Made by a program: the position numbers and the translations under genes. A DNA stretch of 64,000 nt, from IMG/VR virus record IMGVR_UViG_3300026521_000471, positions 124,001 to 188,000 of that record. One strand, 5' to 3'. The notes beneath the pieces are model-generated. The model searched no databases. It was given only the letters and a program-made list of their open reading frames with translations, and was not told the DNA's origin. Of the stretch, positions 21,054 through 39,034 are shown one piece after another; position 1 is the first letter of the stretch, and the number at the start of each line of letters is the position of its first letter.

Positions 21054-22463
21054 TTATTTAAAGTTTTTTAATTCTATTTTTTCAACCTCAAATGGGTATT
21101 GAGCCTCTTTATAAAAATCTTTTCTAGATTTTATATGTTTTTTATCATATTTTAAATTAGATGTTATATCAATTACTGTAACATGTTCTTTCTGTCCAGA
21201 TTTTCTTCTAAGCCCTCTTCCAATCGATTGTATAACTTTTGTAAAACTTTTTCCAGGTGTAGGTGCAAGAATTAAGTTGTTAATATGTACAATATCAATT
21301 CCAGTACTAAGTAATGAATATGTTCCAACTGTTACTAAATTACCACCATAAACGAATTCATTAAATTTCTCTTGTCTTTTATCAACCGTTAATTTTGAAC
21401 TAATATAACCACACTCTAGAAATTCTGATAAATCTTCAGCCGGATCTATATTCTTCATCAATATCAATGTGTTACCTTCTAATGAATCAACAATGGCTTT
21501 CATTAATTTTTGAAACATTTCATTACTTTGTAAAAAAACAGTCTCTTCATGCCAGTCAATAAATGAGCCTAAATATTCTTTAGGGTAAACCAATTCAAAA
21601 ATATTAATATCTATTGAAGATAATATATTTCTCTTTTGTAATTCATGTGCTTTTACATCATAAACCACAGGACCAAAACCAGCTGTTAAATTAGCTTTGT
21701 CTAAAGGATCTTTTGGCACAGTACCCGTCAAACCTATTCTCAAATATGAATTTTTTGCCTCATTCATAATTTGTTGAGCTACATATGCTTTAGCGCCATG
21801 TACTTCATCCCATATCACACATTCAAAATCTCGTATAAAATGTTTATTATTTTGTAGTGTTTGCCAAGTAGCCACAATATTAATTTCATTATCTTTTTTA
21901 CCACTACCAAACATACCGACAGGAATATCAAATTGTTTTATATAATCAAATGTCTGTTTTAACAATGATGATGATGGTACAATGACAATCGTTTTCATAT
22001 TTAGTTTATTGGCATATTTAACGATAGCTGATGTCAATAAGGTATTATGATGAACTGTTCCATTTGCTATTTGATATAAATGATTTTCAGAATTAACTTC
22101 GACATCATATAATAAACCCTGTTCATTTAGATTCTCTATATTTGTAACTACTGCCATATGTTTTTCATCAACATTATATAATCTATCACCTATAGACAAT
22201 TCATTGACTTTTTTTATAGTTTGGTCATCTAACATTAAGATATGATTATCAGTAGTTATTATATTCTCTATTGCATCAATCTCTAGCTTTATTAAATTAT
22301 CCTCTTTTACAATAAGACCTTTAATATCAACCCATTTACCGACCTCATCTTGAATTTGAATTGGTGTACGTTGAAAATATTCCTCATCTCTACGAAATGC
22401 AATATCTTCTTCTAACGATATTATTTTAAATAATTGTTCAAAAGTTAATTCTATTTCTTCCAT
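21054..22463 (-). CDS. uvsW: UvsW-like SF2 helicase, C-terminal half, preceded by split-intein IntC (aa 1-140)
   Basis: Intein blocks B (TTDNH), F (YDVEV) and G (VHHN/T); then helicase motifs Ia VPSSSL, DEVH, GLTGT, TGIDI, QSIGRGLR; no Walker A lysine. Confidence 0.9.
   Translation of the reverse strand: MEEIELTFEQLFKIISLEEDIAFRRDEEYFQRTPIQIQDEVGKWVDIKGLIVKEDNLIKLEIDAIENIITTDNHILMLDDQTIKKVNELSIGDRLYNVDEKHMAVVTNIENLNEQGLLYDVEVNSENHLYQIANGTVHHNTLLTSAIVKYANKLNMKTIVIVPSSSLLKQTFDYIKQFDIPVGMFGSGKKDNEINIVATWQTLQNNKHFIRDFECVIWDEVHGAKAYVAQQIMNEAKNSYLRIGLTGTVPKDPLDKANLTAGFGPVVYDVKAHELQKRNILSSIDINIFELVYPKEYLGSFIDWHEETVFLQSNEMFQKLMKAIVDSLEGNTLILMKNIDPAEDLSEFLECGYISSKLTVDKRQEKFNEFVYGGNLVTVGTYSLLSTGIDIVHINNLILAPTPGKSFTKVIQSIGRGLRRKSGQKEHVTVIDITSNLKYDKKHIKSRKDFYKEAQYPFEVEKIELKNFK
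22044..22463 (-). mobile_element. split intein C-fragment (140 aa, no endonuclease)
   Basis: Ends His-Asn at 22044, followed by Thr+1; lacks block A. Confidence 0.88.
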
Positions 22464-22574
22464 TTATAGTCCTAAGAATTTATATAATATATTAATTATA
22501 CATTTTATGTTAATAAATATTTAAAGTATAATAGTGTATAATAATAACTTATTACCATAAAAAGGGATTTTAAC

Positions 22575-23516
22575 TTGAAATTTTTAATTAGTTTTTTATT
22601 TATCATAACACACTTACAAGCACTAAGTACAGAACAAATAAATAAAATAAAATCAACCTATAAAATAGGAATGGAAATAAAAGCGTCAGATGGGATGACA
22701 TTTGGTTATAGTTTAGCAAGTATTATGGGACAAGAAAGTTCTTGGGGACGATACGTTGTTGGTGATAAATGGGCAAATGGAAAATTAAAGCCTCTTTATG
22801 ATTCATCGTTAGGAAACTTTCAAGTAAAATTAGAAACAGCAAAAATAACAATTAAAAAATTTCAACATTTAAAAAAGAAATATGCATATTTAATTTATGA
22901 TGGAAGAATAAATTATGATAAATTTGCTAAATATAAATCGGATTATATATATCTAAAAACTATTACTAAAGATGGTTTTAATAGTTATTTTGAAGCTAAA
23001 TCTGTACATTTATTAAATAATAAAAATTATGACAAAATATTATATTATGAATCAATATTAAATAATCCTATTTGGATTAAAAGATATAACTCTGAGGAGA
23101 AAAGAGCTATAAGAACTTTTAAATGGGCAAAAAAAGAATTAAAATACCATAAAAATATTCATAAAAATAATATTAAAAAATTGAAGATTAAATTAAAAGA
23201 ACAATACCCACAAGATTTAGCACACCTTAAAGAAGTAAAAATCCAATATATAAAAATGAAAAGGAAAGTAGACAAAGATGTATTGATGGTTAATAAATTA
23301 TTAAGTGATTTTAATTTTGGTGCTGAAATTGCTGGACACTATCTCCTTTTATGTTATGAACAAGCTAAGAAAAAACATTTTAAAAATCCTCTTAAAAAAG
23401 CAATAGGACGATATAATGGTGGGTGGAATAATACTCAATATTATCTAAAAGTCAAAGAACGTATGAAAGTTGTTAAAAAAGTTATCAATAATAATTTAAA
23501 TACAATGAATAAATAA
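22575..23516 (+). CDS. secreted lytic transglycosylase-like protein
   Basis: Signal peptide; IMGQESSWG (catalytic Glu), GNFQV and AIGRYNGG, with a long basic insertion. Confidence 0.65.
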   Translation: MKFLISFLFIITHLQALSTEQINKIKSTYKIGMEIKASDGMTFGYSLASIMGQESSWGRYVVGDKWANGKLKPLYDSSLGNFQVKLETAKITIKKFQHLKKKYAYLIYDGRINYDKFAKYKSDYIYLKTITKDGFNSYFEAKSVHLLNNKNYDKILYYESILNNPIWIKRYNSEEKRAIRTFKWAKKELKYHKNIHKNNIKKLKIKLKEQYPQDLAHLKEVKIQYIKMKRKVDKDVLMVNKLLSDFNFGAEIAGHYLLLCYEQAKKKHFKNPLKKAIGRYNGGWNNTQYYLKVKERMKVVKKVINNNLNTMNK

Positions 23517-23540
23517 AAGAAAAATAAGGATGAAACATTC

Positions 23541-23894
23541 ATGGTTATAAATTTTGATAAACAAATAGACCCAAATATAACAGATATTAAAGTAGCTGGA
23601 CAAGACTTTGAAATGATTAATCTTGTAACTGGTGGATCAATGGGGTGGAGTATCGATATTGATCTAAATATTATCAGTTTTCTGGGAACAACAGATGTTC
23701 AAATTACTTTTAATTCAGCATCTTCATTAGAACTTTACTCTAAACAAATAGAGTTGGCTACTAGTACACCATATAATCCATATACACATGGATTAGCAGA
23801 AGATCCTCATTATGATAAAATACCGACAGGTCAAATTCAAACACATACATATACTGATACAGATATTGAACAAGACTTGATCAATAATAATTAA
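23541..23894 (+). CDS. late hypothetical protein, tail shared with the next gene
   Basis: C-terminal HTYTDTDIEQDLIN. Confidence 0.6.
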   Translation: MVINFDKQIDPNITDIKVAGQDFEMINLVTGGSMGWSIDIDLNIISFLGTTDVQITFNSASSLELYSKQIELATSTPYNPYTHGLAEDPHYDKIPTGQIQTHTYTDTDIEQDLINNN

Positions 23895-23910
23895 ATAAAG
23901 GAATTAAATA

Positions 23911-24285
23911 ATGGTTAGATTAGAATTTGTTAAAGGACAAGGTGGTGTTGCAAATATCATTAATGGTAATCTAAGAGATACTGATAGAGAAGAATTATTA
24001 GATATTGAAGATGCAACACGAGTTATAGTTAATTTCTATTCAGCTATCGCTATAAATGATGATTTAATTGCTATGGAGATATCTGGGTATATTATTGTTT
24101 TTGAGTCATTAGAAGATATGGAACCATATCTAACACAAATAGATTTATTAGATGGTGAAATTTTTAATCCTGGTATTAATGGAATAAAAACTCCGGATTG
24201 GGATGTAGCAAGTAGAGATAAAACCGAAGGTATTGTAGAACATACATATGAAGATACCGATATTGAAAAAGATCTAATAAATTAA
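23911..24285 (+). CDS. hypothetical protein, tail shared with the previous gene
   Basis: C-terminal HTYEDTDIEKDLIN. Confidence 0.6.
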   Translation: MVRLEFVKGQGGVANIINGNLRDTDREELLDIEDATRVIVNFYSAIAINDDLIAMEISGYIIVFESLEDMEPYLTQIDLLDGEIFNPGINGIKTPDWDVASRDKTEGIVEHTYEDTDIEKDLIN

Positions 24286-24329
24286 TATATCACATATAAA
24301 TAAAAGTGTAAAAAAAATAAGGAGTTACT

Positions 24330-24539
24330 ATGAAATTAGGTGAACTATTAAACAAAAATACAATAAATGAAAATTCAAATATTACTGAAGATGTTTTAAG
24401 ACAAGCAATGGCAGAATCAGGTAAAACTCGAGCGAATGACCTAAAAGCATACTTAAAATATAAATTTCCAGATATGCCTTTTACTGCTAAAGAACTAACA
24501 GCTATTGTAAAAGAGTTTAGAACAACTCTAGATTATTAA
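24330..24539 (+). CDS. small late protein (MKLGELL leader)
   Basis: TATAAATA at 24295 and AAGGAG RBS. Confidence 0.65.
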   Translation: MKLGELLNKNTINENSNITEDVLRQAMAESGKTRANDLKAYLKYKFPDMPFTAKELTAIVKEFRTTLDY

Positions 24540-24541
24540 TC

Positions 24542-25141
24542 TCAATTATAAGGTTCTATATTAAATTCTTCAAATAGAACCTTAAGCCCAACAGTTAATT
24601 TTCCCGACTTTGGAAAGTCAGGAAATTTTTTCTTTCGTCCACTCAATCCATATTCTTTTTTTAATTTATTATAATTTCGTTTAGATACCTTTTGAGCTTT
24701 TGGTTCTTCTGATGGATGTATATAAAAATTTCCTTCTTCATCTTGATATGCACCAGCTTCTAAATAATCTGCTAAATTTCGTAAAAAATCTGGCAAACTG
24801 ATCGGGTGGTTAGTTTCATCTGCTCCGAAATATCTTTTCCAGTTATTTGTGATTTTTCCTTCCATTGCATTTGCCCTAAACTCTAAAGCATTTCTAATCG
24901 TACCTTTTTGTTCAGAACATTCTTCATTTTTTAATTTATGAATATGATCTAATACCATTTTATCGAGTTCAACCTCAATTCCTAATAATGGACATATTTT
25001 ATTATTTTCTAACCATAATTTTTCTTTTAATTCTTTTATATTTTTCTGTTTTAATTGTATTAATTGTTTCATAGTTTTATTTATATGATAAAAATTGTAA
25101 AATTGATATAAAAAAAATAAGGTTTTGTAATGGATGAGCAA
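24542..25141 (-). CDS. recombination endonuclease VII-like nuclease (true start probably 25072)
   Basis: CPLLG..VLDHIH..GTIRNAL..ANAMEGKI His-Me finger pattern. Confidence 0.7.
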   Translation of the reverse strand: MLIHYKTLFFLYQFYNFYHINKTMKQLIQLKQKNIKELKEKLWLENNKICPLLGIEVELDKMVLDHIHKLKNEECSEQKGTIRNALEFRANAMEGKITNNWKRYFGADETNHPISLPDFLRNLADYLEAGAYQDEEGNFYIHPSEEPKAQKVSKRNYNKLKKEYGLSGRKKKFPDFPKSGKLTVGLKVLFEEFNIEPYN

Positions 25142-26551
25142 ATAGATGATACAGAATATGAAGACGCTTTAGCCGAATTAGAGGCAGAATCATCTTCAAA
25201 AAAGAAAAAGAAGAAAAAAACAGTTGAACATTCAGAAGGCAAACTATTAGATATTGAAGATAAAGAACGAATTTTACTTGCTCAACTTATTAATAACCCA
25301 GAATTATTTGTTAAAGGTATAACTTTTCTAGATAAAGATTTCTTTGAATCAAAAATTAATAAATTAATTGTGGAATTTATGATTGATTATTATGATTTAT
25401 ATAAAAGTATCCCGCCTGAAGATGCTATACTATTAGAATTAAATTTAGATAACGTACATGATGATTGGTTAGATATAAATAAACCTTGGCCAACAGAGTA
25501 TCTTGAAGACTATTTAAATGCGTTTATAAAAAATATGAGTATGAAAGGTGCTATCGAAGATAGTATTGAATTACTAGAAGAAGAAGATTATGGAACTATT
25601 GAGAAGAAGATTAAAGATGCTGTAAACGTTGATATTGATACAAAGTTAGGTGTAACCATAGATACTGATAAAGATAATTTTCGTGACTTATTTAAAATGC
25701 TAACATCAACTGAAGCTACAATTCCAACTGGATGGTGGAACGTAGATGATAAATTAGATGGTGGTGTAACAATACCAAGTTTAAATTATTTATTAGCTAA
25801 ATCTGGTGGTGGTAAATCAATAGGTTTAATAAATTTAGCATGGAATTATATTCAGATGAAAAGGGATGTTATTTATATTTCTCTAGAACTAAAGGAAGAG
25901 AAAATCATGAAGAGGTATATAACCCACTCAACTAAAATTCCGACCCATCAAATTGAAAAGTCTGAGATGGAAATTTATAACCATCTAAAGAAATGTGATA
26001 ATAAGGGGTATGGTCGATTTACTGTTCATTTCTATCAACCCAATACACTAAGTGCAATGAAGTTGGAATTATTTGTAAGAAATTATTTACAAAAATATAA
26101 TACAGTACCTATTATTATTCTAGATTATGCAGGTTTAATGACACCAAATGGTAAAAATTGGCAAGGTATGTTTGAAAAAGATAAATATGTTTCTGAAGAA
26201 TTAAGAGCTGTGGCAACGTTATTTGATACGATCGTTTGGACAGCAGACCAATATAATAGATGTATATCATTTGGTGAACAGGTAATAACACCGAATGGTA
26301 AAAAAAATATTGAAGATGTTGAAATAGGGGATAAAGTTCTTGGGGGCAATAATAGTTATCGTACTGTAACAGCGATAACGGAGCCGGAAGAACAAGAAGT
26401 ATATAAAATTACTTTAAAAAGTGGAAAAACTATCAAAGTATCAGGAAGACATATCTTCCCAAAAGTTTTAGAAGATGGGAAATTAGTAGAAGATTGCATA
26501 TTATCTTCATTAAGTATAGGTGACAAGTTGGTGGTCTCCGATAAAATATGA
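25130..26551 (+). CDS. T4 gp41/DnaB-like replicative helicase, N-terminal part, ending in split-intein IntN
   Basis: AKSGGGKS Walker A, YISLEL, IILDYAGLM, WTADQYNR, then CISFGEQV intein block A. Confidence 0.9.
   Translation: MDEQIDDTEYEDALAELEAESSSKKKKKKKTVEHSEGKLLDIEDKERILLAQLINNPELFVKGITFLDKDFFESKINKLIVEFMIDYYDLYKSIPPEDAILLELNLDNVHDDWLDINKPWPTEYLEDYLNAFIKNMSMKGAIEDSIELLEEEDYGTIEKKIKDAVNVDIDTKLGVTIDTDKDNFRDLFKMLTSTEATIPTGWWNVDDKLDGGVTIPSLNYLLAKSGGGKSIGLINLAWNYIQMKRDVIYISLELKEEKIMKRYITHSTKIPTHQIEKSEMEIYNHLKKCDNKGYGRFTVHFYQPNTLSAMKLELFVRNYLQKYNTVPIIILDYAGLMTPNGKNWQGMFEKDKYVSEELRAVATLFDTIVWTADQYNRCISFGEQVITPNGKKNIEDVEIGDKVLGGNNSYRTVTAITEPEEQEVYKITLKSGKTIKVSGRHIFPKVLEDGKLVEDCILSSLSIGDKLVVSDKI
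26261..26548 (+). mobile_element. split intein N-fragment (96 aa)
   Basis: Cys1 block A; IEDVEIGDKV; block B VSGRHIF; ends LSIGDKLVV with no block F or G. Confidence 0.88.
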
Positions 26552-26736
26552 AAAATGGAACATTCAGATTAAAAACTAGATTATTTATCTTTCCAAAATC
26601 ATTCTTTGGTATTGAGAAGTGGGGCATTCAAAAAGTATATCAACGTTTTTGGAAAGACTATGTTAATTATGAAGAGCCAGACTTTGCATGTTGGGAAGAT
26701 TACTGCTGGGATAATCAAATAGAAAGATTAATTTGA
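26548..26736 (+). CDS. small hypothetical protein
   Basis: ATGA-coupled to the helicase gene; no intein or helicase motifs. Confidence 0.5.
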   Translation: MKNGTFRLKTRLFIFPKSFFGIEKWGIQKVYQRFWKDYVNYEEPDFACWEDYCWDNQIERLI

Positions 26737-26787
26737 TTTTAAGGTTAATTTAGATATTATTTTTAAATATAATTCAAGGAGAATAAT

Positions 26788-27312
26788 ATGCTAGTTATTA
26801 AAGCTATACAATTTGCAGCAGAAAAACATAAAGGTCAAGAACGAAGATGTTCTGGATTACCCTATGTAACACATCCAATTATTGTATCTCAACTAATTGC
26901 AAAATATAAAAATGGCTCTAAAAAGCTAGATGAATTACAATGTGCTGGATTACTCCATGATGTTTTAGAAGATACAGATTGTACATATTCTGAGTTAGAG
27001 CGGGAATTTGGTCCATTAGTAGCTTCAATAGTCGTTGAATTAACGTCAGATCCTGTAGCAATTAAGCAGCTAGGTAAGAATGAATATTTAAAGCAAAAAA
27101 TGATTAAAATGTCTAAATATGCTTTTATCATAAAATTAATAGATCGACTTTCAAATGTTTTAGACAAACCTGGAGAGTCATATGTTAAAAAGACGTTAAA
27201 TATGATGGAATTTCTTAAAAAAAATCGTCCTGATATAACTGAACGGCAATTAAGAATTATAAATGAGATAGAAAATGTGTGTCTGGAGTTTCAAAAAAAT
27301 GAGTGTAAGTAA
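26788..27312 (+). CDS. HD-domain (p)ppGpp hydrolase-like protein (small alarmone hydrolase/Mesh1 type)
   Basis: AAEKHKGQER, PYVTHP, LLHDVLEDT, IKLIDRLSN; no synthetase domain. Confidence 0.85.
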   Translation: MLVIKAIQFAAEKHKGQERRCSGLPYVTHPIIVSQLIAKYKNGSKKLDELQCAGLLHDVLEDTDCTYSELEREFGPLVASIVVELTSDPVAIKQLGKNEYLKQKMIKMSKYAFIIKLIDRLSNVLDKPGESYVKKTLNMMEFLKKNRPDITERQLRIINEIENVCLEFQKNECK

Positions 27313-27817
27313 ATTTGAATATCAACTATTAGAAGATGAATTGAAAAAAACTAAACGTGAGTTAAACCAATTAAAAAATATGCAAGAATTTGAATATCTA
27401 GTAGGTCAAGAATTTAAAATGCCTATGAAATTTGGTTTTGATATTACAGAGTCAAATATTAAATCACTAAAAAGTGATTTAGGATTCATTTTATGGGCAC
27501 TTATAAAAAATAACCATTTAACTCCAGAAGATTTTGATGATGAAGTAATGTCAGCTGTTGAAAAAATAAATCAAATACGTCCAAAAAATTACGTAGAATT
27601 TAAAGCAGCAATATCGTTTAGTAGATTACGTCAATCTAATAAATATGGTAGTACCTATATTGAAGAATTTCAAACACAAATTTTAAATGATGTTTATTGG
27701 TTAGGAATCTGGTTTTATATTAAAAATCCACAAGAATTTTTATTTGAATATAATAATAAAATTATGCAATTAAACACTAAAAATTTTTCATTTGTAAACC
27801 CCCAATTATTTGTTTAA
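27275..27817 (+). CDS. hypothetical protein (C-terminal NPQLFV; start probably 27299)
   Basis: ORF; GGAG RBS precedes ATG at 27299. Confidence 0.55.
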   Translation: MCVWSFKKMSVSKFEYQLLEDELKKTKRELNQLKNMQEFEYLVGQEFKMPMKFGFDITESNIKSLKSDLGFILWALIKNNHLTPEDFDDEVMSAVEKINQIRPKNYVEFKAAISFSRLRQSNKYGSTYIEEFQTQILNDVYWLGIWFYIKNPQEFLFEYNNKIMQLNTKNFSFVNPQLFV

Positions 27818-27850
27818 TAGTTATAAATATTTTAAAAAGTAGGTTTAAAT

Positions 27851-30028
27851 ATGGATGTTAAATATTTTTTAGAAAAATTAGGAAGTTTATTAATTATTGG
27901 ATTTGTTATTATATCCACGTCTATTATACTTTATTTTAGCTATAAGTCAAATAATAAAGATATTATGGATGACATTGACAATAATTTACGCCACGAATTG
28001 ATTATTTTATCTATTGCGTCCGAAGATTTGTTTAACAAATATAACAATATACTTACAATGTTAGGGGATAATATTTTATCCAAAGATAATAAACAAAAAT
28101 ATTTAGATACAGCATTAAAATTAGAAACTGATGCAGTGGGCTATGGTTTTATATCACCCGAAGGTAATATATTAATTAACTCCTCAAACGTCGATATAAA
28201 GAAGATCTCTAATTTTATCTCCAACCCCAAAACTAAAGGAACATTTCTTAAAACTATAAAATCAAAATCATCAATTTTAGGACGGTCATATTTATTTAAA
28301 CCGACAAATCAATTAATTGTACCAATAAGAAAAAGTATTAGGAAAAATTCAAAAGTATATGGTGTACTAGCGGTAGGCATTAATATAAATAAGTCGTTTT
28401 CTAATTTATTTACAAATAAAATACATAACAATTCTATAATTTTATTAATCAAAAATAACTCAGCTAGAATTCAATATTCAAACGATAATACGTTCGAAAT
28501 AGATTCTATTTTAAAAACCGATAATCCTCGACTTTTTAAAACTATAAATCAAATGACATTGACTAATACATCATTAAATAATATAAAATATAGGGTAGGT
28601 GTAAAATTTATTGAAAAATACAATCTATGGCTTGTTATAGGCTTTCCTTCAAAAGTTATATCTTCATTAAAAAATGAATGGTTAATAAATGCTGTATCTA
28701 TATGGTTTGTTTTTAACGTAAGTTTTATTATAATGATATTAATTATTAATAAGATTAATAACGATCGGAAAAATGAATTGGAATATATTTCTATACATGA
28801 TCCATTAACACATATTGGAAATAGATATTATTTAAATAAGAAAATAGTCGATTACGAAGAATATAGTATGCTATTTTTAGATCTAGACAATTTTAAATTT
28901 ATAAATGATAACTTCGGACATAATTACGGAGATAAATTTTTAGTTTCTATAGCAACAGAACTTAAAAAAAATATTTCTGCTGATGATTTATTAATACGTT
29001 TTAGTGGTGATGAATTTATAATTATTACTAGGGAAATGAATAAAGATAAATTATTAAGTTTTGCTAAAAGATTATTGAATATGACTAATGAGAAATTTAA
29101 ATATGAGCATAAGACAACCATGAGTATTGGTATTGCACAACGAGAGGGATCTGAAGATCTACATAATGTAAAATATAAAGCAGATTTAGCTTTATATATA
29201 GCAAAAGAAGAACTAAACACCATTATATTCTATGATAAAAATATAGAAGAATCATTTAAAGAAGAACATTTAATAGAAAATGAACTATTAGAAGGTATTA
29301 TTTTAAAAGAAATTTTCATGGTTTATCAACCACAATTAAATACTAAAAATAAAATCGTAGGAATAGAAGCATTAGTTCGATGGAATAATTCAAAGTTAGG
29401 TTATATAAATCCCGAGACATTTATCAAAATCGCTGAAAAAAATGGAAATATGATAATTTTAGGTGATCATATATTAAATCAAGTTTTTAGTGATATTAAT
29501 ACATTTAAAAATATAATTCCAGATAATTTTAATATATCTATTAATATTTCTGTTAAACAATTTATGGAAGATAACTTTGTACAAAAATTAAAGGATAAAT
29601 TATACCAATATAAAGTCAATCCAAATAATATCACATTAGAAGTAACAGAAAATATATTTATTTTAGATTTAAACTATATGGAACAAATAATAAATGATTT
29701 GCATACATTGGGTGTAAAAATTTCTATTGATGATTTTGGAACAGGATACTCTTCTTTATCTTCTGTTAAACATCTGACTATTGATGAAATAAAGATTGAT
29801 AAATCTTTTGTAGATAATATTGAAAACGACCATAGTTCCAAAAGTATGGCTGAAGTAATTATTAAAATGAGTAAAATTTTTAATACCATTATTTTAGCTG
29901 AAGGTATAGAAAATATCAAACAAAAAGAAATTCTTGATAACTTAGGGTGCGATTTCTACCAAGGATATTACTTTTCAAAACCTTTACCATTAACAAAATT
30001 AAAAGAGTTCATAAAAAATAATATTTAA
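27851..30028 (+). CDS. membrane Cache-GGDEF-EAL c-di-GMP enzyme
   Basis: Two TM helices flank a Cache-like domain; HDPLT, DLDNFKFINDNFGH, RFSGDEF; GIEALVRW, EVTE, DDFGTGYSS, EIKID, AEGIE, QGYY. Confidence 0.92.
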   Translation: MDVKYFLEKLGSLLIIGFVIISTSIILYFSYKSNNKDIMDDIDNNLRHELIILSIASEDLFNKYNNILTMLGDNILSKDNKQKYLDTALKLETDAVGYGFISPEGNILINSSNVDIKKISNFISNPKTKGTFLKTIKSKSSILGRSYLFKPTNQLIVPIRKSIRKNSKVYGVLAVGININKSFSNLFTNKIHNNSIILLIKNNSARIQYSNDNTFEIDSILKTDNPRLFKTINQMTLTNTSLNNIKYRVGVKFIEKYNLWLVIGFPSKVISSLKNEWLINAVSIWFVFNVSFIIMILIINKINNDRKNELEYISIHDPLTHIGNRYYLNKKIVDYEEYSMLFLDLDNFKFINDNFGHNYGDKFLVSIATELKKNISADDLLIRFSGDEFIIITREMNKDKLLSFAKRLLNMTNEKFKYEHKTTMSIGIAQREGSEDLHNVKYKADLALYIAKEELNTIIFYDKNIEESFKEEHLIENELLEGIILKEIFMVYQPQLNTKNKIVGIEALVRWNNSKLGYINPETFIKIAEKNGNMIILGDHILNQVFSDINTFKNIIPDNFNISINISVKQFMEDNFVQKLKDKLYQYKVNPNNITLEVTENIFILDLNYMEQIINDLHTLGVKISIDDFGTGYSSLSSVKHLTIDEIKIDKSFVDNIENDHSSKSMAEVIIKMSKIFNTIILAEGIENIKQKEILDNLGCDFYQGYYFSKPLPLTKLKEFIKNNI

Positions 30029-30085
30029 GTTAATTATAAGTTTATTTTGTATATAATAAAACCTAATAAAAATTTAGGAGTTAGA

Positions 30086-31009
30086 ATGGAAAAACTTATG
30101 AAGACCATTGGATGGTCAGTAGTACTAGGTATTGGCCTTGTTATAATCTTAGGATTTATGGCAATCACAAAAACTGGATTTGCAATTGTAAATGACGGTG
30201 AAAGAGGCGTTATGAAAACAGGTACAAAATATGATATGACGGAAGTACAACCCGGTTATCATTTCTTTATACCAATCTATCAGAGTATTGAGATAGACAC
30301 GATTCGTCCAAAACTTATTAATTATTCAAGAACAGAAGCAAACAAAGAAGATTCTGAATTACTTATTTTTGAACCGGTTCTTAAAGGTTTAGATAAAAAA
30401 GGTATTCCTATTGAGTTAGCTTTAAGTATTGAAGTAAAACCCGTAGCAGATCAACTAGCTGAAATGTATAAGAATGATGGTGATTTTGAAAATGCATTCT
30501 ATAAAAAAGTTAAGCAGGTAAATAGAGAGGCCGTACAAGCTACAATTTCTAGATTTAGTGTTGATACTATTATGGATAAAAGACCTGAAGTTGAAAAGTA
30601 TCTTACAGAAAAACTTAATGAAAGTTACTCTAAAAACCCATATTTTAAATTGGTAAATATCAATCTTAAAGATATTATAGTGCCAAAAGAGATCGCTGAT
30701 AAGATGTTAGAAGTTCAATCGGCTAAACAAGATGCTCTCAAATCACAAGAGTTAATTAAGAAAGCACAAAATGAAGCTAAAGCGAGAGAAGCTAAAGCTC
30801 AAGGTGAAGCTAATGCAGTTAAAATTGCGGCACAAGGTAGAGCTGATGCTATTTTAGTCGAGGCTAATGCCCAATCAAAAGCTAATAAATTACTTAGTGC
30901 ATCATTAACTGATAAGGTTATTAAAATTCAAACCGTTGAAAAGTGGAATGGTTCTGTACCTACTTATGTTGGTGGAGAAAATTCACAATTTATTATGGAT
31001 ATGAAATAA
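30086..31009 (+). CDS. SPFH/band-7 (prohibitin-like) membrane protein
   Basis: TM helix, GERGV, PGYHFFIP, AEA-type coiled coil, EKWNG..P; AGGAG RBS before ATG at 30086. Confidence 0.85.
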   Translation: MEKLMKTIGWSVVLGIGLVIILGFMAITKTGFAIVNDGERGVMKTGTKYDMTEVQPGYHFFIPIYQSIEIDTIRPKLINYSRTEANKEDSELLIFEPVLKGLDKKGIPIELALSIEVKPVADQLAEMYKNDGDFENAFYKKVKQVNREAVQATISRFSVDTIMDKRPEVEKYLTEKLNESYSKNPYFKLVNINLKDIIVPKEIADKMLEVQSAKQDALKSQELIKKAQNEAKAREAKAQGEANAVKIAAQGRADAILVEANAQSKANKLLSASLTDKVIKIQTVEKWNGSVPTYVGGENSQFIMDMK

Positions 31010-31023
31010 TCCTTACAACTAAA

Positions 31024-31046
31024 TATCTAGGTTTTTAACCTAGATA
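31024..31046 (+). terminator. terminator hairpin
   Basis: TATCTAGGTT-TTT-AACCTAGATA. Confidence 0.65.
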
Positions 31047-31099
31047 CCTCTCTTTATACTAATCCCTAATAAACCCATATAAATAAATTAAAAATATGG

Positions 31100-31303
31100 A
31101 TGTATAGAATGAAAAAACAATTTACATACCAAAATAATATTTTAGCATTTCCTTGCGGTATTGAAGTTGAAATCAACAAACAGAAACTCAAAGACATTTA
31201 TAAAATCTTTAAATTGGAAAATGAATTTGAAGAAATGATTAAAATAGGTTATAGTGAAATACCCCAATGGGCTGCTTCTCAAATTAGACAATATCTAACA
31301 TAA
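31100..31303 (+). CDS. small late hypothetical protein
   Basis: TATAAATA at 31078. Confidence 0.45.
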   Translation: MYRMKKQFTYQNNILAFPCGIEVEINKQKLKDIYKIFKLENEFEEMIKIGYSEIPQWAASQIRQYLT

Positions 31304-31341
31304 AAATTGTATAATAAAAAGAAACAATTAAGGAGTATATT

Positions 31342-32457
31342 TTGGCTTTACCAAAAAAGAAAAAAATTTTTTCTATCCCACTTAACCCGTACACTTCAAA
31401 AGAAGACTTTGAAAACATCTTTGTTCCATTCTTAAAAAAGAATGCCGATTGGATTTATGATGTATATTTTACAAGTAGAATCCCACCATTTATGCAAGAT
31501 GCAATGGGAGCAAATTTTGATAATAATTCATTAGTACAAATTTTTAATAATGCTATGGCATTAGAACAAGCTACAGGAGTTAGAGTTTCAGCAACTTTCA
31601 ATAATGTTAATGTTCCACCTACTGCAGAGAATTTAGAAATATTTTGTTCAAATCTACAATTTTTATATGATGCAGGACTCAGAAGCATGACACAACCACA
31701 CAATCATTGGATGATGACCGGTGTATTTAAAGAAAAATTTCCCGAATTACAAGTAAAGAATACAGTTTTAAAAAGAGTTGCTACAGCACAAGACTTTTGG
31801 ACTGCATGTGAAGCAGGTTATGATTATATTAATATTGATAGAATTCTTTTGCGTGATGAAGAAATGCTAAAGAGAATTAAAAAAGCCCAACTTAAATTTG
31901 AAAAAGAAACTGGAAAATATGTACCTATCGCATTACTTGCTAATGAAGGGTGTAGAGGTAAATGTCCGGTAATGAATGAACATTATACAATTAATAATGC
32001 TAGTGGTAGCAAACAACCAGGAACAGACAAACCATATTTTTATCAAAAAATTAGTGAAGTTAGTTGCCCTAAATGGAGATTAGAAGATCCTGCTTATTCA
32101 TTCAAAATAGGCAACATACCACCATATCGAGAAGATTTTGAAAGACTTTTAGAGTATGTAGATGTAATAAAAACTCATGGTAGAGAAGGGTTTGGACTAC
32201 TAAATGATACTATCAAATTCATTGAGAGTTATATTAATGGTGATGAAGAATTACATGACATTTCAATTAGAGGTCAAATTGAAGATTTAAAAGTCGACCA
32301 AAATAAATTGCAATTATGGCGAAAACATATTAGAACGTGTCAATTTGAATGTTGGGATTGTCATCTTTGTGATGAACTAGTAGCATCAGCTCAAAAAAAG
32401 AAGGATAAAGATTTAGGTACATCAATAGATGATTTAATAAATTCATATGAAGGATAA
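31342..32457 (+). CDS. peptidase U32-family (Fe-S hydroxylase-like) protein
   Basis: LLANEGCRGKCP..EH, SC, DVIKTHGR, C-terminal CxxxCxxCxxC. Confidence 0.65.
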   Translation: MALPKKKKIFSIPLNPYTSKEDFENIFVPFLKKNADWIYDVYFTSRIPPFMQDAMGANFDNNSLVQIFNNAMALEQATGVRVSATFNNVNVPPTAENLEIFCSNLQFLYDAGLRSMTQPHNHWMMTGVFKEKFPELQVKNTVLKRVATAQDFWTACEAGYDYINIDRILLRDEEMLKRIKKAQLKFEKETGKYVPIALLANEGCRGKCPVMNEHYTINNASGSKQPGTDKPYFYQKISEVSCPKWRLEDPAYSFKIGNIPPYREDFERLLEYVDVIKTHGREGFGLLNDTIKFIESYINGDEELHDISIRGQIEDLKVDQNKLQLWRKHIRTCQFECWDCHLCDELVASAQKKKDKDLGTSIDDLINSYEG

Positions 32458-32719
32458 CATTATGATTAAGATAATTTCAAAATATGATGATAATTCATCA
32501 TTAGATTTTTTAGCGACTAAATGTAATTATGAAGTTGTTATAAGTACTATTGATGATACAACACAATCCACTATATGTGATGGTAAAGATGCAGGACTAA
32601 AAGCATTAGAAGTAATTGATCAATATAAATTGCTTTCTGATAGTAATCCTCCTTTCCCATTCATAGAATCGACAATAGTAAAATATCTTGCTCCATTAAT
32701 TAATAAGATAGGTTTATAA
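32447..32719 (+). CDS. hypothetical protein
   Basis: Coupled ORF. Confidence 0.55.
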   Translation: MKDNIMIKIISKYDDNSSLDFLATKCNYEVVISTIDDTTQSTICDGKDAGLKALEVIDQYKLLSDSNPPFPFIESTIVKYLAPLINKIGL

Positions 32720-32721
32720 TT

Positions 32722-33333
32722 ATGAGTGTTTTACTTGGAAGTAAGATTATAGAAGAAGTATCTAATGGGAAAATTATCATTGAACCATTCAATAAATCTT
32801 TTGTAGGACCAAATTCTATTGATATAACATTAGCTAATAAACTAATTACATATGAACATTGTGAAATTAGAAAAATTGATGGGGAATATACTGTTGTACC
32901 CGCAAAAATATTTGGTTATCAAGAGCCTATTATTGATATGGCTAAAGAAAATACAACGTATGAATTAAAAATTCCGGAAGAAGGATTAGTACTTTCTCCA
33001 AATATTCTATATTTAGGAAGTACAAATGAAAAGGCAGGAAGTGATTATTATGTCCCAATGTATGAAGGTCGTAGCTCAATGGCTCGATTAGGAATACAAT
33101 CTCATGTTTCTGCAGGATTTGGGGATATTTTTTTTAAAAGTAATTGGACCTTAGAAATAACAGTAGTACATAAAACAAAGATATACCCAAATTGTCGAAT
33201 TGGACAAGTATATTTTCATGAAGTAAATGAATTAGAAAGAAGAGATTTAATTAAAATGAAAAAATACTACCAAGGAAAATATTCAGACCAGATAGGTCCT
33301 CAAAAATCTAAATCATATTTAGATTTTCAATAA
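32722..33333 (+). CDS. dcd: dCTP deaminase
   Basis: PNSIDITL, EGRSSMARLG, AGFGD, WTLEI, IGQVYF, KYSDQ. Confidence 0.88.
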   Translation: MSVLLGSKIIEEVSNGKIIIEPFNKSFVGPNSIDITLANKLITYEHCEIRKIDGEYTVVPAKIFGYQEPIIDMAKENTTYELKIPEEGLVLSPNILYLGSTNEKAGSDYYVPMYEGRSSMARLGIQSHVSAGFGDIFFKSNWTLEITVVHKTKIYPNCRIGQVYFHEVNELERRDLIKMKKYYQGKYSDQIGPQKSKSYLDFQ

Positions 33334-33357
33334 ATAAAATAAAAAAGGAGATTTACT

Positions 33358-34272
33358 ATGGCAGTAATTCAAAATATATTCAAAAATCTTGAATACAAAT
33401 TAAATATGACCGAAGAAATAAAACTTTTCAAATGGTCAAATAAAAATATTAAAGAAAAATTAGCGGAATTAATGGATTGGAATGAACAATATTCACCAGA
33501 AGCAGTTATTGTTAAAGCAGCTGAGCAAATTTTAGAATTAAATTATCCTAATGATTATTTAAAGTATTCTGCTATGCAGCAAAAATTTAAACACTCACAT
33601 CCATTTTATATTGAAAATACCGTTGATGATGTATCGGGATTTATTGATTGGGTGAATAGTGTATTTGACCATTTTGATGGGCTTCAAGAAGGTTTATTAG
33701 GTGGATTAGTAGTAACTCCAGCTATTGAGGGGTCTATGATTTCATGCGAATATGAAAAAGGGAAACTTGTAAGAGTACTTAACAAGGGTGATGGAGATGA
33801 CGCAGAGATGATTATTAATATGATGGATTTATCATCAATCCCACAAGAAATTTCAGTTAAGAAAAATATAGCTGTTAGAGGAATAGTCACCCTTAAAGAT
33901 CCAAATAAAAAGAATAAAGGACAAACTGTTACATCGGCTGTTAATTCAATAATGTTTGCAGATAATGCTGATGATAGTAATCTAGTATTCATACCTAATG
34001 AATGGCTTGCTGCTGACGGTAAATGGCAGAATACTTCAAAAACATATCAAATACTTAAAGATAATGGATTTATTGTTCCAGCAGTACATAAGGCTGCACA
34101 AGTTATTGAGGCTCTTGAAAAATATGAAGAATACATTGCAACAGATTTTGGTTATGAATTAATGGGTTGTAGAATTGAAGTAGAAAAATCAGATACAATT
34201 AATGAGCTTATTGACATTATGAAAGAAGAAAATCTTTCAGATTATCAACATAAAATAATTTTGATGGGATAA
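33358..34272 (+). CDS. degenerate NAD-dependent DNA ligase adenylation-domain homologue
   Basis: VTPAIEG..ISCEYEKGKLVRVLNKGDG..E, IPQEI, AVRGIV; motif I Lys absent; no OB, HhH or BRCT domain. Confidence 0.6.
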   Translation: MAVIQNIFKNLEYKLNMTEEIKLFKWSNKNIKEKLAELMDWNEQYSPEAVIVKAAEQILELNYPNDYLKYSAMQQKFKHSHPFYIENTVDDVSGFIDWVNSVFDHFDGLQEGLLGGLVVTPAIEGSMISCEYEKGKLVRVLNKGDGDDAEMIINMMDLSSIPQEISVKKNIAVRGIVTLKDPNKKNKGQTVTSAVNSIMFADNADDSNLVFIPNEWLAADGKWQNTSKTYQILKDNGFIVPAVHKAAQVIEALEKYEEYIATDFGYELMGCRIEVEKSDTINELIDIMKEENLSDYQHKIILMG

Positions 34273-34291
34273 AGGTTTTATACCTTTATCC
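34269..34291. terminator. hairpin between convergent genes
   Basis: GATAAAGG-N7-CCTTTATC. Confidence 0.55.
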
Positions 34292-34567
34292 ATTATATCT
34301 GAATGGTTCACTATCAATCGTTATTGTCCCTTCAGATGAATCTGTATCTCCTGCAAATAATGAATCCTCTTTATTTTCACCATCTTGAATGAATGTCCAT
34401 ATTAATGTATTACCTTTAGTTTTAAATTTCAAATTTTTAATTTCGATACCTAATTCTTCAGCATACTCAATTAAACTATCTTTTATATCAGCCTTAACCG
34501 CTTCCAATCCCTTATAATCATTTTTAACTTCTACACTATTACTCTCTAGTAAATCCTTTAATTTCAT
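34286..34567 (-). CDS. small protein (MKLKDLLE leader)
   Basis: AGGAG RBS; coupled in a minus-strand operon. Confidence 0.65.
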   Translation of the reverse strand: MKLKDLLESNSVEVKNDYKGLEAVKADIKDSLIEYAEELGIEIKNLKFKTKGNTLIWTFIQDGENKEDSLFAGDTDSSEGTITIDSEPFRYNG

Positions 34568-34854
34568 TTGTTCTTCTCCTTATTTAATTTTTTATTTTTA
34601 CCCCATTTTTTAAAAGTTTTAGCTAGGGTCGCTCTTTTTTTTAATAATACCGCTTCATCATGATCTTTCTTTGAAGCTTTAGGATTATTTATAATTTTAT
34701 CAGCTTTTTCAATAGCTGTTTTAATACAATCATAAGATGTTTTTCTAAATCCCATATCTTCACATTGTTGAGTAAAAGCTCCAACTGTTCCTTTTTTCTT
34801 CATAGATTTAGCTACATCTTGAGCCCACCATTCATTTAATTGTTTTAATTTCAC
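34564..34854 (-). CDS. small basic protein (MKLKQLNE leader)
   Basis: GGAG RBS, GTG start. Confidence 0.65.
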   Translation of the reverse strand: MKLKQLNEWWAQDVAKSMKKKGTVGAFTQQCEDMGFRKTSYDCIKTAIEKADKIINNPKASKKDHDEAVLLKKRATLAKTFKKWGKNKKLNKEKNK

Positions 34855-34863
34855 TTTGTACTC

Positions 34864-35418
34864 CTAAAATATAAATATTTCTTTAATTTCTGGCATTAAC
34901 TCAGCAATATCACTACTAACAATCTCAGTCAAATTCTTATCTACATAATTAATAAACTCGTTAATAAGTATTTTTGACTCCTTAATCATTTTATTTACTT
35001 GTTCTTCTTCAGGTTTATCCTCTATACCTTCAAATAAATAAAGGGCTGAAGTATCCAATTTATTATATATGGCATTCATAATTTGGTTATTTGTTTTTGA
35101 ACCTATTTTAGAACCAAACATTAATGAACCTTTCAAATATCGTTCTCCAGGCGATCTAAAAGCAGACCCCATCCTAGTAACTGATATACCAAATTTAAAA
35201 TATATTTGTAATGGATTCTTATCTGGAAATGCTGAAAACTCATAAATTATATCTAATGTATCATTCCAACCTGTTCTAAGTTCTATTGCTTCGATACTAA
35301 TACCATAATCTTTAAAAGAATTATCTATTTGAACTAAAAATTCATCTTTTGATTTTTTTAAATAAAAATATTGTATATCCTTACTGGGAAACATACCCAA
35401 ATTATTGATAAATTCCAT
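34864..35418 (-). CDS. hypothetical protein
   Basis: Coupled ORF. Confidence 0.6.
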   Translation of the reverse strand: MEFINNLGMFPSKDIQYFYLKKSKDEFLVQIDNSFKDYGISIEAIELRTGWNDTLDIIYEFSAFPDKNPLQIYFKFGISVTRMGSAFRSPGERYLKGSLMFGSKIGSKTNNQIMNAIYNKLDTSALYLFEGIEDKPEEEQVNKMIKESKILINEFINYVDKNLTEIVSSDIAELMPEIKEIFIF

Positions 35419-35660
35419 TATATTTCCTGGATTATTATAGTATTCATACCTAAATAAGAGATACTATATTTTCTCATTAGAGATGGTATAGAATTCATAT
35501 CATCAACTATATTTTTAACTCTTTTCGATGGTAATGATACATCAATTTCGTACCCATTTGACTTTTTAAAGTATTTAACTTTTAAATTATTATTTTTAAA
35601 ATATTCTTCAATATCACTTATTTTAGATTCATTTATCTTCAATATATTCTTTAATAGCAT
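35418..35660 (-). CDS. small protein (MLLKNILKINE leader)
   Basis: AATAAATA at 35684-35691 on the minus strand. Confidence 0.55.
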   Translation of the reverse strand: MLLKNILKINESKISDIEEYFKNNNLKVKYFKKSNGYEIDVSLPSKRVKNIVDDMNSIPSLMRKYSISYLGMNTIIIQEI

Positions 35661-35769
35661 AGTATTTTAACCTTTTTTTCTTTTATTTATTAAAAAATTA
35701 CTTTTTAGTACCAAAATTATAATTAATTTTGTAAAGTAATCTAAAAGAACTATATTTTAAAGGCATAAT

Positions 35770-36324
35770 ATGATAATTAAAAAACATAGAAATAATTTAA
35801 ATCTATTGAACTGCTCTAAAGAAGAAATGGAAAAGATACTTACTTTTCTAGAAAATGATATGGATACTTCACTAAAAATAGAAGAATATCCGACATGGGA
35901 TAAATGGAGTGATCATATTAATATTATGGATCATGCCAATTCTTTAGGCGATATTTCCGAATTTAAACGTTCGGGAGTATATAAAATATACCATAAGAAA
36001 AAACTTATATATATTGGTGAAACTAGATGTGATGGTTCATTAAGTACTAAAGATCATAAAGTTAGAAATGGTATGTGGGCTAGAAGAGGAGATTTTAGAA
36101 GTACAGCGTTAAGTAATGGGACTGTTAAAAACCCATATGGTAATGCTTTATCATTTCTTGAAAAGTTTGGGGTAGATGAATTAAAAAATGTAACTCATAG
36201 ATTCCATGTTGTATCACCAGAATTTTGTCTTGAAGCTGAAACAGATTTATTACAGCAATATTATGATAAACACAAAACATTACCAATATTACAAACCGAA
36301 ATCGATTATAAGCGTGTTCAGTAA
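35770..36324 (+). CDS. GIY-YIG-like nuclease domain protein
   Basis: SGVYKIY..LIYIGET..R..E pattern. Confidence 0.55.
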   Translation: MIIKKHRNNLNLLNCSKEEMEKILTFLENDMDTSLKIEEYPTWDKWSDHINIMDHANSLGDISEFKRSGVYKIYHKKKLIYIGETRCDGSLSTKDHKVRNGMWARRGDFRSTALSNGTVKNPYGNALSFLEKFGVDELKNVTHRFHVVSPEFCLEAETDLLQQYYDKHKTLPILQTEIDYKRVQ

Positions 36325-36372
36325 TTTTTAAATAAAATGTAAAATATTACTATAATCAATTAAAGGCTTAAA

Positions 36373-37398
36373 ATGAAATATGAATGTATAATGGATTTTG
36401 CATTAACCGATAATAAGGTTGGCGATATAGTAAATATTGAAAAAACGAATGCCGGATACTTAGTAAATGATATTGAAATATTAGATTCTGAATCAACATA
36501 CAAATATTTTAAAAAAAGAAAAATCCCAGGTTTTAACCATGCACCATTTAGCCATTCAAAAATGGAGACATGGGCTAGTTGTCCTAAAAAATTTGAATTT
36601 AATTACATCATTCGTCCACCTAGGGAATCTACACCCAACCCTATTTTAGAAAAAGGAACTTTATTTCACGCTGTTTTAGAGTTTGATATGGTAGATAAAC
36701 TTGATGATTTTGATATTCCTGATAATTTTGAGGCTCTGTCTCGTGATGATTGTGGAAAAATTATTACTCAAGCATTAGAATTTTCAGAAAATTCAGAAAT
36801 TTACCAATGGATTAAAAATCTAAAAGGTAAAAAAGTACCAGAACAAGAAATGTTCCTTGGACCAAATCTTGAACCTGTAGAATGTTTAGAAGATTCTTTA
36901 ATACGAGGCTTTATAGACTTAATAATTTGGGATGATGAAACTGGTTCGTGTTATATATTTGATTGGAAAACAGGCGGCAAATCAAAAGAGGCTCTAAAAA
37001 AGTGGCCTAAATCAAAAGACCAATTAGAATTATATGCCATTTGGGCTCATGAAGTTTATGGTGCTAGTTATATAGAAACTGCGTTTGTTTATGTAGAACA
37101 TAATCATATGGCTAAATATACATTTGAATCTAAAGATATTCCTATACTCAAAAAAAAGTTTTTAAATAAAATAAATAATATTGAAAAAGATAAAACTTTT
37201 AATAAATCTATATCACAACTTTGTGCATGGTGCGATTTTAAAGAATTATGCTTAGGTATTCCAGCAGATAAAAATCCAAGAGAAATAACTAAGGATGAAA
37301 TATTTTCCGCAGCTAAAGGTACACCTAAAAAAAATAAATCAAATTCTAAAAATACTGCTTTCTTAAATAAAATTAGAAAAGGTCGAAATAAAGAATGA
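36373..37398 (+). CDS. Cas4/RecB-like PD-(D/E)XK exonuclease
   Basis: SHSK..CPKKF, GTLFHAVLE, RGFIDL, DWKTG, QLELYA, CAWCDFKELC. Confidence 0.85.
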   Translation: MKYECIMDFALTDNKVGDIVNIEKTNAGYLVNDIEILDSESTYKYFKKRKIPGFNHAPFSHSKMETWASCPKKFEFNYIIRPPRESTPNPILEKGTLFHAVLEFDMVDKLDDFDIPDNFEALSRDDCGKIITQALEFSENSEIYQWIKNLKGKKVPEQEMFLGPNLEPVECLEDSLIRGFIDLIIWDDETGSCYIFDWKTGGKSKEALKKWPKSKDQLELYAIWAHEVYGASYIETAFVYVEHNHMAKYTFESKDIPILKKKFLNKINNIEKDKTFNKSISQLCAWCDFKELCLGIPADKNPREITKDEIFSAAKGTPKKNKSNSKNTAFLNKIRKGRNKE

Positions 37399-38003
37399 AA
37401 CTCGAAACATTAATTTCAACAGTTAAAGATAAAATTATATACAAAATGGATTTCTATCAATCTATTATTATTATTAATGTTCCAAAGCAAAAAATTTTAA
37501 ATAAAGGTACTATAATTTTTTTGCTAAATAAACAATCAGGTGTATTATCTGGAGAATGGTTTAATAATAAAAATAGCAATATAAAATTATTTGGAATTCT
37601 AAATAATAAATTTATAAAATCCATATTAAAAAATAAAAAATTAAGATTATTAAATAGTATCTTACCTGATGTATTAGTCAATAAAGATTTTATAATAGAA
37701 TATAAATTTCTTTCACCAGAAGAGAAAAAATTATTGAAAGAGTATATAATATCTTCTGAAGAACAAATACACAACAAGTATATGACATTTGATAATAAAT
37801 TTAATAAAGTCTCTTGGGAACAAAGCATTAAACTATCTTCTAACTATTTTGTAGAATGGTGTAAAGATAGCTCAAATATACAAGATTGTATTAAAAATGC
37901 AATCAACATTGCTAATAAAAATTTAGATATAAATTTAAAACGCAGAGCAATTTTAAATAAATGTTTTATAGATATTAGAAAATGGAGAGAAAAAAATGGC
38001 TAA
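37395..38003 (+). CDS. hypothetical protein
   Basis: ATGA-coupled ORF. Confidence 0.55.
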   Translation: MKLETLISTVKDKIIYKMDFYQSIIIINVPKQKILNKGTIIFLLNKQSGVLSGEWFNNKNSNIKLFGILNNKFIKSILKNKKLRLLNSILPDVLVNKDFIIEYKFLSPEEKKLLKEYIISSEEQIHNKYMTFDNKFNKVSWEQSIKLSSNYFVEWCKDSSNIQDCIKNAINIANKNLDINLKRRAILNKCFIDIRKWREKNG

Positions 38004-38544
38004 AAAAAAGAAAAATATACCTATCCATATTACAAAACGTGATTCATCAACATTTGTTTTAAATAAGATTTCGTCTAGTATGTTATATCATGTACAACAA
38101 AAATTCGCATATTTACCACCAGGTTATAAATTTCAACCTAGATTTAGACTTATGGGTATTAAAGGTGTACAAGTTAAGCTAGTACACGCAGATGGTTCAT
38201 TCCCAATGGGATTATTTTCAGAAGTTGTAGAATATTTAACAGAGGTGCAAAAAAAGAAAGTTACTATGAGCAGTGAAGTAATGGAACATTTTTTACCACT
38301 AACTGATTTTTTTGAAGATGGTATAAAAGATGATATATTCTCAGACTATGAATTCGATGGTAATCCTGTAATATTAAGAGATTATCAATTAGGTGCAGTT
38401 GAAGCCGCTTTTGAAAATAGAAACGGCTTATTAAATTTATCTACTGGTGCAGGTAAGTGCTTAGGTGGTGAAACTAAAATACGAGTAAAATTAAGTAGTG
38501 AACTAATTAAAAAATATAAAGTTATTATAAAAGGCGAATTATGA
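37996..38544 (+). CDS. uvsW: UvsW-like helicase, N-terminal half, ending in a 28-aa split-intein IntN
   Basis: PGYKFQPRFR (UvsW N-domain), Q-motif LRDYQ, Walker A STGAGK followed directly by CLGGETKI. Confidence 0.9.
   Translation: MAKKKKNIPIHITKRDSSTFVLNKISSSMLYHVQQKFAYLPPGYKFQPRFRLMGIKGVQVKLVHADGSFPMGLFSEVVEYLTEVQKKKVTMSSEVMEHFLPLTDFFEDGIKDDIFSDYEFDGNPVILRDYQLGAVEAAFENRNGLLNLSTGAGKCLGGETKIRVKLSSELIKKYKVIIKGEL
38458..38541 (+). mobile_element. atypical short split intein N-fragment (28 aa)
   Basis: CLGGETKIRVKLSSELIKKYKVIIKGEL contains block A only. Confidence 0.85.
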
Positions 38545-38831: not shown

Positions 38832-39034
38832 TGATAACTGAAATTATAAGATTTAACTGTCATGTATTAAAGGTAAATAAATATAACAAAATAACTCCTG
38901 ATGAATTGTTATTAGAATATAAAACTCGTAACAACCTTATTTTAGAAAATACGGAAGTATATGTTGAAAGCTGTAAATGGGCTGCTGGAAGTACTAGTAC
39001 TATTATAACAAAAGTGAAAAGGATAGAAAAATGA
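38831..39034 (+). CDS. small hypothetical protein
   Basis: Coupled ORF. Confidence 0.5.
   Translation: MITEIIRFNCHVLKVNKYNKITPDELLLEYKTRNNLILENTEVYVESCKWAAGSTSTIITKVKRIEK

Follow-up and report, generated by a model that had tools for sequence, protein, structure and literature searches.

A probable atypically split intein in the P-loop of a jumbo-phage UvsW-type helicase encoded by two distant genes

Can two genes lying far apart on a phage genome, and on opposite strands, encode a single helicase? The question is raised by a stretch of 64,000 nucleotides (hereafter the window), corresponding to positions 124,001 to 188,000 of IMG/VR record IMGVR_UViG_3300026521_000471, a jumbo phage record of 224,467 bp (224 kb) obtained by metagenome assembly. 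In the window two divergent open reading frames (ORFs), separated by 15.5 kb, carry the two portions of a UvsW-type superfamily 2 (SF2) helicase, each fused to an apparent intein fragment. The first gene (N piece) has the N-extein followed by the N-terminal intein fragment (IntN), the second (C piece) starts with the C-terminal intein fragment (IntC) and continues with the C-extein. A first-pass annotation, made on the sequence alone, had regarded the two as a trans-splicing pair, and both ORFs, their coordinates and motifs are as described there. The answer to the question is very probably positive, and a naturally, atypically split class-1 intein would interrupt the Walker A P-loop (GAGK↓T, the arrow marking the extein-intein boundary) of a UvsW-type SF2 helicase of this phage.

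Phages Cassandra and RaK2 have uninterrupted UvsW-type helicases, and each extein was aligned to these on its own. The N-extein stops at the TG(A/F)GK motif of these proteins and the C-extein starts in the next column, with neither gap nor overlap, the initial TLLTSAI being aligned with TLVTAAL and TIICAAL of the contiguous homologues. As the exteins abut, joining K154 of the N piece to T141 of the C piece would rebuild GAGK-T as initially claimed, and the product would have the size of 483 amino acids (aa; 154 + 329) already calculated in the first-pass annotation. The N piece matches the Pfam family UvsW_N (PF21241) with 32.4 bits (cut-off 25.3), and PHROG DNA helicase families up to residue ~156. 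From T141 onward the C piece matches Pfam ResIII (1e-10) and Helicase_C (1.5e-8), and a profile of the C-piece family finds T4 UvsW (PDB 2oca) at 1e-17. As in the UvsW family, the UvsW_N domain is followed by an SF2 core with motifs I-VI intact. The notion that the exteins would together restore the GAGK-T of a UvsW-type SF2 helicase is thus supported. The host protein is the same as in T4 (UvsW, PDB 2oca, 1rif), UvsW_N domain plus SF2 core, but in T4 it is one uninterrupted chain, and identity to phage UvsW proteins is only ~27-36%. A megablast search of 20 kb against deposited phages gave no match, i.e. no close phage relative. The phage is a jumbo phage with a UvsW-like helicase, and no close relative of T4.

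IntN and IntC were studied as separate pieces, and the structural model covers IntC without the IntN strands. The AlphaFold (AF2) model of IntC, built on a 74-sequence alignment, has a mean predicted local distance difference test (pLDDT) score of 93, and its first helix spans residues 8-19. In a Foldseek search of the PDB the top 50 matches were all inteins or bacterial/ciliate HINT (BIL/HINT) domains, with template modelling (TM) scores up to 0.80; Pho RadA, Prp8, VidaL, gp41-1 and Npu DnaE are among them. A six-sequence IntC profile, compared with solved structures, retrieved PolB16 OarG (8cpn, 8.5e-6), VidaL (2.8e-5) and gp41-1 (1e-4). The alignment with PolB16 OarG opens with the initiator Met of both IntC fragments, and therefore the split position appears to be equivalent. 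Natural contiguous versions of the intein were found by an exhaustive IntC search against 1.84 billion representatives. Among them, P0179 is a UvsW-like protein with a contiguous intein at the same site (...TGAGK↓CVSGKTPITISVSEKL...VHHN↓TSITAG). The N piece maps to residues 30-159 of P0179, IntN being aligned with the start of its intein, and the C piece to residues 177-396. The two are thus colinear and do not overlap, and the break lies in a 17-residue linker. Fold search, profile match and colinear mapping support the original view that the two fragments are parts of one Hint domain. By its anatomy (Cys1 after GAGK, block B His, block F, HHN, Thr+1) the element is a predicted class-1 intein. 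It is atypically split, of the S1 type known from PolB16 and VidaL, with the cut between the first beta hairpin and helix alpha1. IntN consists of the first hairpin and a tail of 12-16 aa, which the shortest relatives lack.

Both fragments belong to sizeable families. N pieces of ~180 aa form 71 clusters at 90% identity, all terminating in GxGK↓CLG..., and Cys1 is invariant in the 69 N pieces that were aligned. The length of IntN varies from 14 to 32 aa (14-16 aa in some relatives), with one outlier of 63. K53, H74 and N140 are invariant in 74/74 IntC sequences, and H128, H138 and H139 are invariant or nearly so. HHN↓T is found in 35/35 two-piece C genes, in line with the assignment of Thr+1 as the nucleophile, and the recurrence of both N pieces and C pieces argues against a chance juxtaposition of motifs. 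Charge counts are as reported in the first-pass annotation: IntN is basic (7 K/R, 3 D/E, net +4), and the first 30 aa of IntC are acidic (10 D/E, 3 K/R, net -7). Family-wide, IntN has a median charge of +2 (61/71 are positive) and the first 30 aa of IntC one of -6, but the short-IntN lineage is close to neutral. The charges are clearly complementary in the window; for the family as a whole this is a trend, and no rule.

Conserved halves need not be spliced. They could have lost the ability to splice and serve as a high-affinity dimerisation module only, UvsW working as a non-covalent enzyme made of two chains. Complementary charges at IntN and at the IntC N-terminus would fit association alone, and relatives (CAETH) do not keep the Thr found in block B of the window (TTDNH). 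In contrast, residues required by the chemistry only (C1, His74, His139, Asn140, Thr+1) are invariant over wide divergence, and an intein of 168 aa between GK and T is expected, from general knowledge of Walker A geometry, to block nucleotide binding. We consider a pure dimerisation module improbable. The variable block B Thr also weighs against the trans-splicing hypothesis itself, as do two other results. IntC scores 31.2 bits with Pfam Intein_splicing, below the gathering score of 35.8; this is expected because the domain is without its N-terminal part. In turn, promoter and terminator scans gave counts at the level of shuffled sequences in this 27% GC DNA, and are uninformative on expression; the promoter-like sequence found upstream of the C piece is weak evidence, since such sites are no commoner than in shuffles.

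That the two ORFs are decaying, functionless remnants of a broken uvsW is far less credible. Split phage genes are sometimes pseudogenes, and no uninterrupted uvsW has been seen in the window. Yet, in the comparison with one relative 88-96% identical (dS ~0.5), the ratio of nonsynonymous to synonymous substitution rates (dN/dS) is 0.03 for the N-extein, 0.04 for the C-extein, 0.09 for IntN and 0.12 for IntC; full-length conservation extends to 71 N-piece and at least 35 C-piece clusters, and every helicase motif is preserved. Purifying selection acts on both intein halves, and decay is extremely unlikely.

Distances between the halves in relatives were measured by exact-protein look-ups, giving five paired assemblies with the window included. 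The halves are divergent and 15.5 kb apart in the window, 17.5 kb in Ga0256837_1000002, 10.7 kb in JACCDW010215491.1 and 15.8 kb in Ga0115369_10000051. In Ga0486129_000021, the most divergent of the five, they are 11.2 kb apart on the same strand, the C piece being upstream of the N piece. Separation by 10.7-17.5 kb is thus found in 5/5 paired assemblies, with N-piece identity down to 43%. The record is a metagenome assembly, but an artefact dispersing halves that are in truth contiguous or neighbouring has practically no probability, since separated halves with their own stop and start codons occur in conserved synteny in four further assemblies, which come from different samples and pipelines, and joining at the DNA level would leave the IntN stop codon and the IntC start context in the way. 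Misassembly, which the first-pass annotation had proposed to check in related genomes, is excluded by these independent assemblies.

The two halves of the window reside on opposite strands in separate transcription contexts, as originally noticed. At the N-piece locus genes are tightly packed in the order PD-(D/E)XK exonuclease, 202-aa ORF, N piece, 96-aa ORF, 67-aa ORF, SmpB. The C piece adjoins PhoH, and the synteny flanking the halves is conserved. An exonuclease gene lies directly upstream of uvsW in RaK2 as well, which suggests that the N piece may have stayed at the ancestral uvsW locus. The immediate neighbours of both halves match no endonuclease family in Pfam or PHROGs, consistent with the earlier statement that no endonuclease flanks the break. 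A search of the junctions for inverted or direct repeats allowing DNA-level joining found only AT-rich chance matches. The matches listed in N-piece profile scans of metagenomes and GTDB genomes are mostly distant uninterrupted helicases; three close relatives are among them, all on short contigs, and none in GTDB genomes. For the 96-aa ORF following the N piece, Pfam, PHROGs and PDB gave no match, and an ORF of similar size (92-103 aa) comes after the N piece in all related contigs examined. Coordinates are collected in Table 1.

Table 1. Coordinates of the predicted uvsW pieces, their segments and other features of the window
Feature	Position	Strand	Description
N piece	37996-38544	+	182 aa: UvsW N-extein (154 aa), then IntN (28 aa); TGA stop at 38542-38544
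N-extein, UvsW residues 1-154	37996..38457	+	UvsW N-domain, Q-motif region LRDYQ, Walker A to STGAGK
IntN, 28 aa, and TGA	38458..38544	+	CLGGETKIRVKLSSELIKKYKVIIKGEL (starts CLGGETKI), directly after STGAGK
C piece	21054-22463	-	469 aa: IntC (residues 1-140), then C-extein (141-469)
IntC, 140 aa	22044..22463	-	MEEIELTFEQLF ... TTDNH (block B, His74) ... YDVEV (block F) ... VHHN (block G)
C-extein, residues 141-469, and stop	21054..22043	-	TLLTSAI onward: remainder of motif I, Ia, II (WDEVH), III (LTGT), VI (QSIGRGLRR)
Intergenic 111 bp upstream of C piece	22464..22574	-	TAGGA ribosome-binding site 6 nt before ATG; promoter-like TTAACA-16-TATATT
96-aa ORF	38541-38831	+	start ATG overlaps the TGA stop of the N piece
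DnaB/gp41-like fragment	25130-26551	+	DnaB_C at residues 198-377
Endonuclease VII/HNH-like gene	24542-25141	-	diverges from the DnaB fragment
SmpB	39031-39480	+	Pfam 1.4e-48
tmRNA	57437-57818	-	ARAGORN; tag peptide ANTKLYIPQTARVAA
dCache-GGDEF-EAL protein	27851-30028	+	725 aa
Hen1-type methyltransferase	41589-42842	+	
PNKP kinase/phosphatase/ligase	44620-47310	+	

We infer the association of the halves, trans-splicing and its rate from anatomy, fold and conservation. Given its class-1 anatomy, the intein would follow the standard pathway, the steps of which (N-S shift, trans-esterification, Asn cyclisation, acyl shift) are established intein chemistry. According to this scheme the N gene would make UvsW(1-154)-IntN (28 aa), and the C gene IntC (140 aa)-UvsW(155-483). 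The basic IntN, folded as a beta hairpin plus a short helix, may dock on the acidic N-terminal region of IntC and complete the Hint fold. Cys1 would form a thioester with Lys154 by N-S shift, and the Thr+1 hydroxyl would attack it, producing a branched ester by trans-esterification. Asn140 would cyclise, aided by His139, and an O-to-N shift would leave the native K154-T155 bond of GAGK-T in a helicase of 483 aa with an intact P-loop. Since the ATP site spans the junction within Walker A, unspliced halves should be without ATPase activity. As to the history of the locus, the most economical view is that a contiguous P-loop mini-intein, of the kind persisting in relatives, broke at the loop following the first hairpin, and that genome rearrangement later separated the halves.

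Natural atypically split inteins are already known (PMC10189870, PMC13014065), as are split inteins in phage replication genes (PMC2677866, PMC6892783) and split halves at separate loci, the example being cyanobacterial DnaE (PMC2677866). The IntN of atypically split inteins spans roughly 15-37 aa, IntC being longer accordingly (PMC13014065). The best match among solved structures, PolB16 OarG (PDB 8cpn; Pasch et al. 2023, PMC10189870), is also naturally and atypically split, pairs a very short IntN with a long IntC, and is of metagenomic origin. However, it uses Ser1 and Ser+1, and its block B His is dispensable (PMC10189870), whereas here Cys1 and Thr+1 are found and the block B His is invariant. 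PolB16 has an IntN of 15 aa and an IntC of 168 aa in a PolB polymerase; in the UvsW P-loop intein IntN measures 28 aa, including an additional helix-like tail, and IntC 140 aa. VidaL (PDB 6vgv) is cysteine-dependent and atypically split at the S1 position, with a 16-aa IntN (PMC13014065). The IntC model superposes on VidaL with a TM score of 0.63 and a root mean square deviation (rmsd) of 2.1 Å at 24% identity, but in sequence VidaL is only a distant relative of the window intein. The full name of VidaL may refer to a 'T4-like helicase'. AceL TerL and GOS TerL are natural short-IntN inteins (25 and 37 aa) from phage-like metagenomic DNA (PMC13014065); in contrast to the UvsW intein they are cut after helix alpha1 (S2) and reside in the large terminase, and no close sequence match with them has been seen.

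As in the UvsW pair, the two parts of cyanobacterial DnaE come from distinct loci that have no endonuclease between them; trans-splicing joins the DnaE parts (PMC2677866). Yet, DnaE is a different host protein, resides on a cellular chromosome, and is split at the canonical position (IntN of ~100 aa or more, IntC of ~36 aa). The fractured genes gp41-1, NrdJ-1 and IMPDH-1 (Dassa et al. 2009, PMC2677866) similarly are phage replication and repair genes with charge-complementary halves. Their halves, however, lie next to each other with a free-standing homing endonuclease gene in between, and their split is canonical. The UvsW pair departs from such an arrangement: 15.5 kb separate the two halves, which are on opposite strands, and neither has an endonuclease at its side. 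A literature search found no account of a split UvsW. The UvsW pair is a further example of a known, though seldom described, type, that of atypically split, P-loop-inserted inteins.

The IntC sequence matches 118 representative clusters, ~90 of which carry this IntC type at the protein N-terminus, i.e. in split form. Exteins in the family include ClpB/ClpA, ClpX, MoxR-type AAA_5, RecA, PhoH, SF2 helicases, DnaB and others, and the intein is always located at GK↓T/S of the P-loop. The insertion of inteins in P-loops is well known (PMC4760082). The initial remark that short-IntN splits are rare is correct for the literature; in sequence databases, by contrast, IntC sequences of this type are common, the majority being in split form.

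In relatives UvsW has a further break, at motif II (WDE↓C), made by a canonical split intein in some, with the protein in three pieces, and by a contiguous intein in others. The window lacks the second intein and has WDEVH, the closest relative having WDECH. The middle protein of three-piece UvsW comprises IntC1, the extein up to WDE and IntN2 (P0008, P0011, P0012, P0259-P0272). The C-terminal pieces (P0233-P0258) are represented by a 289-aa protein that opens with a 36-aa IntC2 (MKIKKIEE...VKN↓CH...). P0218, P0220 and P0225 also belong to the set of relatives with a second UvsW intein. Two other proteins, P0131 and P0162, have the IntC type at the N-terminus, and an IntN of the same type at the C-terminal end, after a GVGK P-loop, the junctions being GVGK↓CLRGNQEIVV... 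and GVGK↓CLERNTRVKV.... Two split inteins of the same family on one chain raise the question of how mis-pairing is avoided.

Natural split inteins whose IntN is short enough to be made by peptide synthesis are sought as ligation tools, and only a handful, namely AceL, GOS TerL, VidaL and PolB16 OarG, have been characterised (PMC13014065, PMC10189870). To these the locus described here brings a predicted Cys1/Thr+1 pair whose IntN measures 28 aa, against 14-16 aa in close relatives. A large, mostly split family hosted at GK↓T/S of ClpB, ClpX, MoxR, RecA, PhoH and helicase genes could be a source of numerous orthogonal pairs. The practical interest resides in the short IntN and in the many related pairs, the biological interest in a stable, endonuclease-free dispersal of gene pieces. 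A phage can plausibly hold an important repair and replication helicase in distant pieces over long evolution, without a homing endonuclease, and the same lineages cut UvsW into three pieces and split DnaB as well.

T4 UvsW ends origin-dependent replication. It may be speculated that the split UvsW is a maintained post-translational AND gate, active only when both of its separately controlled units are expressed, and that the P-loop intein family supplies one phage lineage with several mutually orthogonal short-IntN pairs, namely UvsW in two or three pieces and ClpB-like proteins with IntC and IntN on one chain; this extended scenario is rather unlikely.

A second split helicase is encoded in the window. 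The DnaB/gp41-like ORF ends in a 92-aa IntN, DQYNR↓CISFGEQV...SGRH..., followed by a stop codon, and is thus split at the canonical position. Its C-terminal counterpart is absent from the window. The same DnaB fragment is found in JACCDW010215491.1. The endonuclease VII/HNH-like gene, the nearest of its kind to uvsW, adjoins DnaB, not uvsW, and could be a homing endonuclease.

In 4/5 paired assemblies SmpB is the third gene downstream of the UvsW N piece; in Ga0486129_000021 it is missing from the genes called around the N piece. Together with the transfer-messenger RNA (tmRNA) gene, it makes up a predicted complete trans-translation pair in the phage. Two other genes, labelled here and in Table 1 from Pfam matches of the syntenic genes of a relative as Hen1-type methyltransferase and PNKP kinase/phosphatase/ligase, would form an RNA repair pair. 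The dCache-GGDEF-EAL protein, a phage-encoded protein of cyclic-di-GMP signalling, is present in a close relative too.

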